A stretch of 63,910 nt of DNA, filler included, from Octopus bimaculoides (lineage: Eukaryota): assembly GCF_001194135.2 (NCBI RefSeq). It is 4 parts of 4 records of this genome, joined end to end, with 100 filler letters (N's around TTAATTAATTAA, not from the genome) between each part and the next. Parts side by side here need not be neighbours in the genome. Positions count along the whole stretch, not along the records: positions 1 to 31,983 come from NC_068990.1; 3 more parts are not named here. One strand, 5' to 3'. Below, piece after piece: positions 10,894-31,983 of this stretch. Each line of letters starts with the position of its first letter. Position 1 is the first letter of the stretch. The translations under genes and the position numbers were made by a program. The notes beneath the pieces are model-generated. The model was not told where the DNA came from. It did no database searches and worked only from the letters and a program-made list of their open reading frames with translations.

Positions 10894-12053
10894 GTAATGG
10901 AATCTTTATCACCCACTCCACTTCGTTTGCTAATTTTTGATGTCTTTTTTTTAATAAAAAAAAAAAAAAAAAANNNNNNNNNNAAAAAAAAAAAAAAAAA
11001 AAATTTATCGACATGCATGTTACAACACAAAGACAACGAAGATTTACAAATTCTCCCAAAATATTCTTACCATATCATTATTTCACTAACGAAAGAATTA
11101 AGGATTCTTCCCCTTGGCAAAATGAATTATTTCCTCTGTCTGCAGATGAGTGCAGTCCAAACTCTCTTTCTCTCTAAGAAGAAACAGTATTTTATACACG
11201 CATCAACTACAACATACCTATTTCAGTACACATTGGGTAAATACAGGAATATGTATTTCCCCACTTAGAAGATAAATTCAGGTCAGTATTCAGATGCTGA
11301 ATATTACCACAAGATGACCTTATAATGCATCATTCATTTGATTTCTGTACAGTTTCAATTTTTAGCAATCAACACAGTTTAGCCTATACTTCCACAGAGT
11401 TAGCTTTGTATCAGAAACTTCCGAATCTCACCTGAGATGTAATAGGCCTCTACCTTCACTACTCTAAAATACTTTACATAATGAAACTCTAAGAATATAT
11501 TAGCTTCAACTAACAGCACCACAACAATATAAATTCCATCATCATGGCCTGTCTTCATTGGCATGTTTCATCTGACATGTTCCTTACATATTGTAGCATT
11601 GCATGTAATTTGGGCTAAATGTCTTTGGAAATTTTGGGCTGGAGATCCTATCTCCCTGAACACGTTTGGTAATCTTTAGTAGTTGAGCTAAATGGGTGTG
11701 TTGTCTTGTGCCTGCTTGCACCAAACTTCTATACATGTATGTATATGTCTAGTGTAATTCTGGTTCTTGGGATGTGAATGTCATTGGATATCGTGTGGAC
11801 GACAAGTCCAAATGTCCGAGTTGTTACTTGCGGACACTTAGATGCATTTGCTCGTTATTATTACCTTTTTAAGAAAAAAAAAAAAAAAAAAAAAGGTTGC
11901 ATTTGTTGCATTTTTCTTTTACTTTCTAATATAAATTGGGGATAAAAAAAAAAGGGGTGGGGAGTTTTGCTGAAACAATTTTCAAATAAATTAACCTCCT
12001 AAAGAAAAAGAGGAAAAGAAAAGAAGAGCTAACAAAAAGTATGATCTTTTAAT

Positions 12054-12085
<32 letters not shown>

Positions 12086-14536
12086 GCATCTATATATATT
12101 ATATATATGTATGTGTATGTATACACTATTGCATGTGAAAATGAAACCAGGTTGCATTCTTTTCCTTTTCTTCTTTTCAATTAACCAAAAGCTTTGATCA
12201 AAAATTGCTAAAGTTTTATCATTATTATTATTATTATTAATATTTAAAATAAATCTCCAAATCAAAATGCCAGGTGTATTACTAACACAATTTGTTGATA
12301 AAAAATCTTAGAATACAATTTTATTTTCAAAACATTAGTTTTTGAGATTTTCGTAAACCAATTTAGACATAATTTCATAATTGATATCATCAGTATTACT
12401 TCTAAATTATTGTTAGTTAAGAGGAAAAAAAAAATCTTCAGAAATTGTTTCAGCTTGACTACAAAGTGCGGTTCTACAAAGTAAATTGGTCAAGATTAGT
12501 CAGATAACTTTGGTCAACAGCTCCATTTAGTGCCATAAACAATGTGTCTCTGAAACCTGCATTATTATTATAACTACAACTACTTGTGTGTCCAACATTT
12601 GTATGTGCATATATATGTGTGTATACATGTGTGTGTGTATGTGTTTCTTACTTTACAAAAAAAGGAAGAATTTTTTTTTTTGTTGAAACTTTGTTAAAAT
12701 TTAATTTAATTTATTTTTTCTTTTTTACCTTATTTTGCTTATATTTCTTCAGATTCCAATACAATATGTATTTCAATACCAAATGGATTATTATAAATAC
12801 ACAATACTAATATTAGAGTATTGAATCTATCTTTCTTAACCACAGGGAACGAATTCATGGAATTTAGTGCAATATTTCAGCTTTCATCATTGTGTTGTAC
12901 CAGATTTTTCAATCCAATATTCTACAAAATATGGATTAATATACATCAAATTTTACAATTTGCTGTACACCTTTCAACAGATTATACTATGATGTGTCAA
13001 TGTGTGTGCACATGCATAAATGTAAGTGCTTATATGTGTGTGTGTGTTTGTATGTGTGTATGTACAGCTTTTACCCAGTGTAATTGTTGTTGACTGTGTA
13101 TATGTAAAAAGTGCTGCATAGGGTTCTAACATATAGGATCAGTTAAATTTTTATGCATGTGGATTAGAATATGAAAAAAAGCATAATTACTAAACCTTTT
13201 ATAATCATTATAGTGTGATGAATAATACCATATGTATTGTTTGAGGTAACACATTAATTATATTTACTGTGTATGACTGGCATGGTTAGCTGCCCGATCA
13301 TTATACTAGCTGATTCTTAGGGGATTTTCAAAGATATTTTCAAAGTTGACAGTTGATATCAATTTGGATTTCTACTTTTTAGAATTATGGAAAATAAAAG
13401 TATATGTTCATGAGATAGAAGCCATTCTGTTTCCAAAAAGAACACAATCCCATTTCTGATTTAGTCTTGCAATGGGGAATTTTGAACTTTAATGTCATGT
13501 TCTTTACAACATCACATCAATTACTAGATGAAATCTAATAAAGCTATACTTGTACACAACACAAGACCTGCTATTACTTCAAAGCTTTTTAAGACTTCTG
13601 TGTTTAGTCCATAGCTAAACATTTGCTAATGTTAGCAATGCTTTGTATGCATATATAGATTATCTTTCCTTTTTTTTTCTTTATTTGTCATACTACTTTT
13701 AGAAATATCTACCCATTAAGGATAGAAATTTTCTCACTATGTTGCTTTTGACATGTAATTATAAAACTAAATTAAACCAGTAGATGTTGCTTGAAGGTTG
13801 TCCATTTTAAGGTTAAGACGAATACTCTACTTCCTCCAAAGTAATTGCAAATGCAAAATATCTTTTATGCTGGTAAGAACAAACTTGGCTCTGGTTTCAT
13901 AGCATTCAGTGGACGAGTGATAAATTTTTTCCAAGACTTGACTTCAGCTTATTTCTGATCTGATAAATATTCTTGACAACTGGCCTATGTCAGTTGAAGT
14001 GATGAAGAACAAAATGGTCTACTTGTAGCATCTATAAATAAAGAATAGTCCACTATTTTATCCATTCAGTCATGGTATGTCTTAGAATGTTTCTGTTTAG
14101 TATTTCATTATTTAATCCTAGTTCTCCTGAGATTTTCCTTTATTATCTGATAATATCTAATATTACATATATTGTTGGATCACTCTATTTAAACTTCTAT
14201 ATGGGAGATGGAGGTTTGCTGTTTTTGTTTTTTGAGATATATATATATCAAACTAAATTAATGTTCATTTATTCCTAATCACTGCTTGGTGCTGATGCTG
14301 TTATATTTATTATGAGCAAGCAGTCCACTAGTGCAACTCAGTCACTGATGTTGACTGTTTTTTCAGCTTTGAATCTACTCAGGATTATCTCTCTGGTATT
14401 TCCTATTGAAGAAGGCTAAAATGCTAGAAACATATGTCTGGGAATCTAACAGCAGTAAGGACTGGGCGTATATGGTGTTTTTACATCTTTTACTATAAAA
14501 CAATTTCTCCACGTTTCTGGGCTAATCTCAAGTTTA

Positions 14537-14567
<31 letters not shown>

Positions 14568-30712: not shown

Positions 30713-30776
<64 letters not shown>

Positions 30777-31922
30777 TATTTATGTATGTGCATGCTGGTG
30801 TGTGTGCATATATGTATTTTATTTATATATATATACACACACACGCACACACACAAGTACACATACATACACACACATTCACTCACATATGTATATGTAT
30901 ACAAATGTATATGCATAGTCATATGCATATCTAAACACAAACACAAATATTCACATGAGAGATTAAGCTAAGTTGTAGGTAGAATGTGTTTGCATACATT
31001 TTAAATATAAGGTAGTATTTACAATCTTCATATCCATTAATAACTAGGCATCCTCTCAACCAACTCCTCTTATAAACATGTAATTTAATGTGAGTCCCAC
31101 ACTGAATGTATTTAATTAATCCTAAGTATATTTCATATTGCTAACTTAAACTTGCTTTTGAAACTAGGTTTCTTCTGTCTCATAAATTCTGCTGTTTGCT
31201 ATGTTTATAGCTGTACTATTTGAGTGTACTTCTTGCCCCGCTTGCTGCGTTGTTGCGCGGCTATGGGTTGCAGCTGGTATCTTCCTAGCTAGCGCTCTGC
31301 TCTGCCAAACACGGAAGACCATCGCAGCGGTCTTCTTGCTGTTGCTGCTGCTACTATAAATATTTTAAAAAATCATGTTGCATTAGTTGCCCAGTGTCTA
31401 GACTGCTACGAAATAGTGTAATCTCTTTTTTTTTTTTATTGACATAAAGGTCAGCTCAATAGATTTAAATGCTAACAAGTGACACAAAAAATATATATAC
31501 ACACATGTATGTATGTGTGTATGTATATATATATATATATATATGTATATATGTGTGTGCATATATATGTACATATATATATGTATATATATGTATATTT
31601 ATATATATATATTTTGAGCTCAAAAGAAGAAAAGAACTGATGCACCATTTTTTGTGTTTATTGGGTCAATACACTTGGTAGGTATTTTGGTTTACTGCCA
31701 GTTTTACATAGTGACTTTAAAAAAAAGAAAACAAATCGACCAATTAATTTTACTTTATTTTAACACTTTCTTTTGCTTTTGTTTAATGACACAACTTTTG
31801 ACAATTTTGTTTTCAAAATTAGAGTTTAATTTATTTTGAGTCTTTATTTTATATATATACTTACACACATATATGTATATAACATTCGTATAAACATATA
31901 TATATGTTTATATATGTATATA

Positions 31923-31983
<61 letters not shown>

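Follow-up and report, generated by a model that had tools for sequence, protein, structure and literature searches.

Phosphatases of the LAR family are synapse organisers, and in vertebrates tiny alternative exons set their choice of postsynaptic partner. The vertebrate mini-exons lie in Ig2 (meA), in the Ig2-Ig3 linker (meB), in FN5 (meC) and near D1 (meD) (PMC8711739), and a 2024 study added a further micro-exon of these receptor protein tyrosine phosphatases (RPTPs), placed after the last FN3 domain and before the membrane (PMC10883964). As reported, no LAR-family splice insert has so far been described at the junction of the second and third FN3 domains (the FN2/FN3 junction). The locus considered here is a LAR-type gene of Octopus bimaculoides in which such inserts had been proposed. 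The window, i.e., the whole stretch of DNA analysed, has 63,910 nucleotides (nt) and joins four parts of assembly GCF_001194135.2; the piece of interest, positions 1-31983, comes from NC_068990.1 and includes the first 21 kb of the intron after FN2 (10894-31983). In this intron the original prediction had placed at least six candidate micro-exon cassettes, not all expected to be real, as a possible lineage-specific combinatorial linker code. In our reading the six listed include five chance segments, and the sixth (22678-22683, AATCAG) has about an even chance (roughly 0.5) of being a genuine splicing element, for which a cassette micro-exon of 6 nt is the likeliest form.

The published positions of meA-meD agree with the earlier statement that none of them is found at FN2/FN3 (PMC8711739), and the octopus candidates, all located at this junction, do not belong to that set by position. 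By its predicted effect the candidate at 22678 comes closest to meB, which puts a few hydrophilic residues into a hinge. meB of PTPRF, PTPRD and PTPRS has four residues (ELRE or DQRE). Like meB, the candidate would be a very small cassette that keeps the frame of a LAR-family ectodomain, would lengthen an inter-domain hinge by hydrophilic or acidic residues (Glu-Ser in the octopus candidate), and lies within a long intron of a gene for neuronal adhesion. The two differ in junction (Ig2/Ig3 versus FN2/FN3) and length (12 nt versus 6 nt), they are non-orthologous, and the octopus segment is a candidate read from genomic sequence.

Micro-exons dependent on eMIC/SRRM4 in Drosophila and mammals are marked by a strong CUAAY branch point, a long pyrimidine tract, a long AG-exclusion zone and UGC near the 3' splice site (PMC8797185). 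The cis architecture of these neural micro-exons, including a length of at most 27 nt and divisibility by three, is common to the site at 22678. The 5' splice sites of fly eMIC exons tend to be weak, and the donor of the 22678 candidate, being the strongest in its intron, is closer to the mammalian pattern.

The RefSeq isoforms of a LAR-type phosphatase in the crinoid Antedon mediterranea either contain or lack a cassette of nine residues, AFIFTTAPP, placed exactly where two FN domains meet. Cassettes in FN3 hinges thus have at least computational precedent in the LAR family. Like the 22678 candidate, this cassette is an optional short insert between two FN3 domains of a LAR-type phosphatase. 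It differs in being located at approximately the FN5/FN6 junction, in having nine hydrophobic residues and in coming from computational isoform models only; it is of deuterostome origin and without sequence relation to the octopus segment. The same isoforms (X1-X9) also include an Ig2 insert at a meA-like position, skipped whole FN3 domains, and a 17- or 23-residue insert inside an FN3 domain (meC-like), with no differences at FN2/FN3.

Recursive splice sites are known in long introns of neuronal genes in flies and vertebrates, a subject reportedly treated by Duff et al. (2015). The octopus position 22683/22684 resembles in part the zero-nucleotide recursive sites of Drosophila and vertebrates: a pyrimidine tract is followed by CAG/GTGAGG (slashes mark actual or candidate splice sites), the donor could be regenerated, and the position is far inside the intron, which measures at least 21 kb and belongs to a neuronal gene. 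The difference is an earlier AG 6 nt upstream, which should win and would yield a 6-nt exon.

Architecture of the 6-nt site

The features of the site are as follows.

22678-22683, plus strand: candidate 6, 6 nt (ES); acceptor 11.0, donor 14.2
22570-22677, plus strand: 3' splice-site region of the 6-nt candidate, with AG at 22676-22677
22684-22692, plus strand: donor CAG/GTGAGGCC, score 14.2, the highest donor score in the intron

All splice scores in this text were computed with a generic metazoan weight matrix, which is approximate and is neither MaxEntScan nor cephalopod-trained. On this matrix the real splice sites of the two LAR exons upstream (exons A and B, see below) score 8.6 and 9.6 as acceptors and 7.0 and 11.9 as donors.

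The local sequence reads ...attaTACTAATcttcgtttttcctttttccatccattgtccTGCAG/AATCAG/GTGAGGcc. The zone before 22678 is free of AG for 106 nt (22570-22675) and contains a TACTAAT branch-point consensus, with CTAAT at 22638-22642 (-40) and the branch A 35 nt from the AG. A pyrimidine tract with 82% pyrimidine follows (22643-22672), and TGC at 22673-22675 (-5) abuts the 3' splice site. The segment itself runs from phase 1 to phase 1, is shorter than 27 nt, has a length divisible by three and keeps the frame open. Joining the best donor of the intron to one of its top five acceptors, 22678-22683 is the top-ranked AG...GT pair of any length.

UGC, a long AG-exclusion zone, a pyrimidine tract and CUAAY, the signals of eMIC/SRRM4-type micro-exons, are thus all present together at 22678. 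This combination is unique among the 3,302 AG sites of the whole piece (1,483 on the plus strand and 1,819 on the minus strand), even with relaxed thresholds, and is absent elsewhere in approximately 43 kb of natural control sequence. In shuffled introns the cis code alone appeared in about 12% of trials, and the code plus a strong donor at multiple-of-3 spacing in at most 0.25%, a P value which is optimistic because the thresholds of this 'micro-exon code' were set after the site had been viewed.

The other five segments and their background

The remaining segments of the proposed array are listed below.

12753-12767, plus strand: candidate 1, 15 nt (DSNTI); acceptor 8.6, donor -3.1 (TAT/gtattt)
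15831-15854, plus strand: candidate 2, 24 nt (AFQTHVLW); acceptor 10.0, donor 5.5
17747-17776, plus strand: candidate 3, 30 nt (VPVNKPVIFD); acceptor 5.5, donor 5.4 (GTAAGT)
18175-18213, plus strand: candidate 4, 39 nt (AMDGLKTIHPDIA); acceptor 6.4, donor 3.3 (CAC/gtaatc)
21061-21081, plus strand: candidate 5, 21 nt (VHLSNYA); acceptor 5.5 (TAG), donor 9.6

As described in the original prediction, all six segments are preceded by AG and followed by GT at the coordinates given, with lengths of 15, 24, 30, 39, 21 and 6 nt, and all are open in the LAR frame, the translations being those shown above. Its warning that some of them would be due to chance was justified, five of the six lying in weak splice-site context. 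Candidate 1, with a good acceptor and a poor donor, is judged a chance segment, as is candidate 4, which has a weak donor and another AG 11 nt 5' of its acceptor. The scores of candidate 2 are good, yet there is another AG 16 nt 5' of the acceptor and the insert is hydrophobic, and it is probably a chance segment. The same is probably true of candidate 3, where a weak, purine-interrupted (TG)n-like tract (pyrimidine fraction 0.64) stands before the acceptor, and of candidate 5, which has another AG 21 nt 5' of the acceptor and is situated 66 nt before a (TA)n tract and a 638-N gap. The AGs at 16, 11 and 21 nt leave little or no room for a branch point at 15831, 18175 and 21061. A CTAAY branch point was matched in none of these five candidates, and none of them combines a 3' splice site of micro-exon type with a usable donor. 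The peptides AFQTHVLW, VHLSNYA and VPVNKPVIFD are hydrophobic, unlike known hinge inserts. A reading of VPVNKPVIFD (17747) as a degenerate start of the third FN3 domain (VPxQPxNL) was rejected, the likeness stopping at VP. Self-comparison of the piece revealed no repeat linking the six segments, which differ in both length and sequence and do not point to an origin by duplication.

Hundreds of short AG...GT segments arise in this intron owing to its T-rich and AT-rich composition. In-frame open segments with a length divisible by three, between 3 and 60 nt, number 618 on the plus strand of the intron versus 682 on its reverse complement. Segments of 3-39 nt were further counted at two score thresholds, and compared with block-wise dinucleotide shuffles, the opposite strand and the upstream introns. 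At the threshold that admits all six candidates, 25 segments were observed versus 20.3±5.2 in shuffles (P=0.19); the minus strand had 22 and the upstream introns had 26, the latter control consisting of two introns of 10.6 kb together, half the length of the intron tested. At the threshold that admits five, 7 were observed versus 3.4±1.9 in shuffles (P=0.065), and the minus strand and the same upstream introns had 6 each. Well-scoring pairs are not enriched in the multiple-of-3 length class (39, versus 36 and 32 in the other two).

Of the six donors, five score positive (3.3 to 14.2). TGC, which had been a selection criterion for the original six, occurs at most 40 nt upstream of 44-56% of equal-scoring acceptor-like AGs on either strand, and its presence in five of six candidates is therefore unremarkable and the motif no discriminator. 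With no excess of candidates over shuffled intron, opposite strand or neighbouring introns, no excess of multiples of three and no mutual similarity, the proposed combinatorial linker code did not hold. Judged from sequence, five of the six segments are chance products of an AT/T-rich intron, only 22678-22683 stands out from the background, and the array and its code are unsupported. In long AT-rich introns in-frame AG...GT segments with decent sites and a nearby TGC are background, and listing them proves no array.

Readings of the 6-nt site

If 22678-22683 is spliced as a cassette, the spliceosome would recognise the CTAAT branch point with its long pyrimidine tract and pair them with the strong CAG/GTGAGG donor 6 nt downstream, perhaps assisted by an SRRM/eMIC-type factor at the UGC beside the 3' splice site. 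Upon inclusion AATCAG would be read as G/AA TCA G/xx, Glu-Ser being added and the last G restoring the split junction codon. The protein would change from ...NPG-(V)P... to ...NPG-E-S-(V)P..., with a FN2-FN3 hinge two hydrophilic residues longer and with frame and junction codon unchanged. That 22678-22683 is some real splicing element has about even odds, and that it is a genuine micro-exon is somewhat below them. More tentatively still, it may be a lineage-specific neural micro-exon of 6 nt (AATCAG, Glu-Ser) in the FN2/FN3 hinge of octopus LAR, convergent with meB and read via a bilaterian UGC/eMIC code, with a conserved 485-nt block, 0.6-1 kb downstream of the FN2 exon, that could take part in regulating this long intron. 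The sequence shows the gene context, the chance level of the segment counts and the unusual splice signals at 22678; use of the site, its neural character and its effect on hinge geometry are what we infer. If true, a hinge micro-exon evolved by cephalopods in the same gene would represent convergent micro-exon splicing in an independently evolved complex brain.

Several points weigh against a real element at this site. The scores come from the approximate matrix described above, the uniqueness test was designed post hoc, the eMIC cis code has been reported for flies and mammals and not for cephalopods (PMC8797185), and the available related-species DNA reaches only 12099, 650 nt short of the first candidate. 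The second-best pair of the intron, 15166-15170 (ccaccag/CACTG/gtgagg; acceptor 10.5, donor 11.9), is 5 nt long and frame-breaking, and strong juxtaposed sites can thus exist without coding use. This pair has an AG 20 nt upstream, and a dispersed repeat copy stops near 15106, about 60 nt before it; it serves as a natural control for chance juxtaposition. A doubtful but weighty alternative is that all six segments, 22678-22683 included, resemble splice sites by accident in a long T-rich intron and never enter LAR mRNA. The near-equal pair at 15166-15170 and the post hoc test speak for it, as do the background-level segment counts and the lack of a clean FN2/FN3 insert in the annotated LAR proteins retrieved, those of molluscs, vertebrates and echinoderms reading ...QG/VPxQP; a few apparent 'inserts' at this position in LAR gene models look like intron read-through or shifted splice sites. 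Chance would have to account for the best donor and a top-5 acceptor 6 nt apart, preceded by UGC at -5, by 106 nt free of AG and by a consensus branch point, a combination never seen in the natural control sequence and very rare in shuffles.

A recursive (ratchet) splice site or recursive exon at 22683/22684 would make use of the same signals: the upstream exon would first be spliced to CAG/, after which the 5' splice site GTGAGG, regenerated or adjacent, would be used, so that the intron would be removed in two steps with little or nothing left in the mRNA. With its AG at 22682-22683, AATCAG/GTGAGG scores 20.4, the best of all zero-length AG/GT juxtapositions on both strands; 11.8 kb of the intron, itself at least 21 kb long, precede it, and exon B (...GGAG) joined to GTGAGG regenerates a good donor, GAG/GTGAGG, as read from the sequence. 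This reading is nevertheless unlikely, as the AG that comes first after the branch point and tract (22676-22677) precedes the AG/GT by 6 nt, and the usual choice of the first AG would give a 6-nt exon instead of a zero-length one; the second AG scores just 6.2 as an acceptor, and a literature search found no report of recursive splicing in cephalopods, the one paper with both terms having them in unrelated entries of its reference list. Less probable again is the view that a lineage-specific combinatorial FN2/FN3 code exists, with several of the six segments acting as real cassettes under independent regulation. Vertebrate LAR-RPTP genes are rich in micro-exons, with new ones still emerging (PMC10883964), the six octopus segments are open in frame and five of their donors are positive, and the conservation comparison reaches only the start of the intron, to 12099. 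Set against this are the lack of excess over shuffles, opposite strand, neighbouring introns and out-of-frame length classes, the violation of the AG-exclusion zone in three segments, a poor tract in one and a poor donor in another, the hydrophobic character of AFQTHVLW, VHLSNYA and VPVNKPVIFD, and the absence of sequence similarity among the six.

Gene context and the conserved intronic block

The gene features within the piece are these.

5626-5726, plus strand: exon A, first half of FN3 domain 2 of a LAR-RPTP, from tblastn with LAR homologues and the FN2 domains of PTPsigma and PTPdelta in PDB
10692-10893, plus strand: exon B, second half of FN2 (GYKIFYTLNPD...EEIQVMTNPG), from sequence, PDB and tblastn matches
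10894-31983, plus strand: phase-1 intron separating the FN2 and FN3 exons, its first 21 kb, running past the end of the piece
11461-11945, no strand assigned: conserved non-coding block, 485 nt, 570-1050 nt downstream of the 10893 donor

Exon A has the acceptor tttcag/CC (phase 1 in) and the donor GAG/gtaagc (phase 0 out), and exon B has the acceptor ttgcag/GG and the donor GGAG/gtaatg and ends in phase 1, all read from the sequence. The donor G/GT of exon B, at 10893/10894, is the phase-1 donor on which the original prediction was built, and it was correctly placed. Joined, the two exons encode a single FN3 domain of 101 residues, which matches end to end residues 386-484 of PTPsigma 4pbx (E=9e-31) and residues 396-494 of PTPdelta 4yh7. 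Having an FN3 domain orthologous to FN2 of PTPRF, PTPRD and PTPRS, the gene is assigned to the LAR type (type IIa RPTPs), whose other parts (Ig1-3, the rest of eight FN3 domains, a transmembrane segment and two phosphatase domains) would lie outside the piece, and as the domain is FN2, the junction after exon B is FN2/FN3; on both counts the structural matches confirm what had been proposed. The closest named protein to this FN2 is PTPRD of the cuttlefish Acanthosepion pharaonis (84% identity within FN2), by which a cephalopod origin of the gene is supported.

With LAR homologues as queries, tblastn found two LAR exons in the piece, A and B, and neither the third FN3 domain nor any further LAR-like coding sequence downstream of 10893 within it. 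Positions 10894-31983 therefore belong to a longer phase-1 intron, of which they make up the first 21 kb. On sequence evidence this is an ordinary, if very long, intron (at least 21 kb) of a cephalopod LAR-type phosphatase, represented here by its 5' part. It is AT- and T-rich, with many microsatellites and dispersed repeats.

A search of the protein collection with FN2 gave, among the cephalopod matches, a genomic open reading frame (ORF) from a related species; no octopus LAR was among the matches listed, the longest of which has about 835 amino acids. Two cuttlefish PTPRD models (CAE1147228.1 and CAE1147229.1) stop right after FN2 (...QVMTNPG) and continue as a 230-residue low-complexity junk tail. 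One cuttlefish PTPRD model has a 33-residue insert at the FN1/FN2 junction (DPNSIGSGQGYTQATDAEKRNKAAASPADNGGKS), whose counterpart was not found in positions 1-5625 of the window. A 2,385-residue concatenate of intronic ORFs, used as a query for contigs of related species, gave no matches, nor did metagenome scans with the 6-nt site and with the conserved block.

Related-species DNA came from two Logan contigs, L001 and L002 (SRR11869390 and SRR11869391), spanning 10407-12099. Against these the block at 11461-11945 has four substitutions in 472 aligned bases (99.2%), and from 11517 on only one, plus a poly-A run of altered length. Identity (substitutions only) is 81-90% in the flanking intron, and exon B compared with L001 1186-1455 is 99.0% identical, 2 of 202 bases differing. 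With flanks at 81-90% and exon B and the block at about 99%, the divergence here separates constrained from neutral sequence, and the block shows that interspecies conservation at 22678-22683 would be an informative measure. The two differences in exon B compare with approximately 5-10 synonymous ones expected at the intronic rate (10-19%), which suggests that the exon is under extra constraint, e.g., from splicing signals or RNA structure.

The block is a putative conserved non-coding element, possibly an enhancer or an intronic splicing regulator. Other identities were tried and rejected, including structured RNA (fold z-scores -0.4 and -1.4), an Rfam family or tRNA (no match), a protein-coding sequence (no Pfam match), an exon in the LAR frame (weak splice sites only), and an RNA-editing partner complementary to exon B (indistinguishable from other intron blocks).

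Five N-run gaps occur in the intron, all within poly-A or (TA)n tracts with an identical repeat on either side, and none overlaps any of the six candidates. Two of them are 638 N and 206 N long; as the candidates would be spliced as self-contained cassettes, gap length has no effect on their frame. The gap at 10974-10983 is spanned collinearly by a related-species contig. The one at 21973-21982 (10 N) is flanked on each side by the same 37 nt (catatatatatgatattcatatatacatatgtatat), which suggests overlapping contig ends joined with a spacer, i.e., an artificial duplication.

Three families of dispersed intronic repeats were found, at 7201-7340 and 27414-27555 (family 1), at 9473-9577, 14996-15106 and 28445-28566 (family 2), and at 25539-25852 and 28910-29203 (family 3). 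They have 72-77% identity, are in part inverted and overlap none of the six candidates. They are probably SINE-like (short interspersed element) or other transposon fragments; ARAGORN found no tRNA-like head in them. An ORF at 6353-6502 on the minus strand gives a weak, sub-threshold Pfam match to DUF7099 (E=0.043) and contains IHIHHDNAQPHT, which resembles the HDNARPH motif of mariner/Tc1 transposases.

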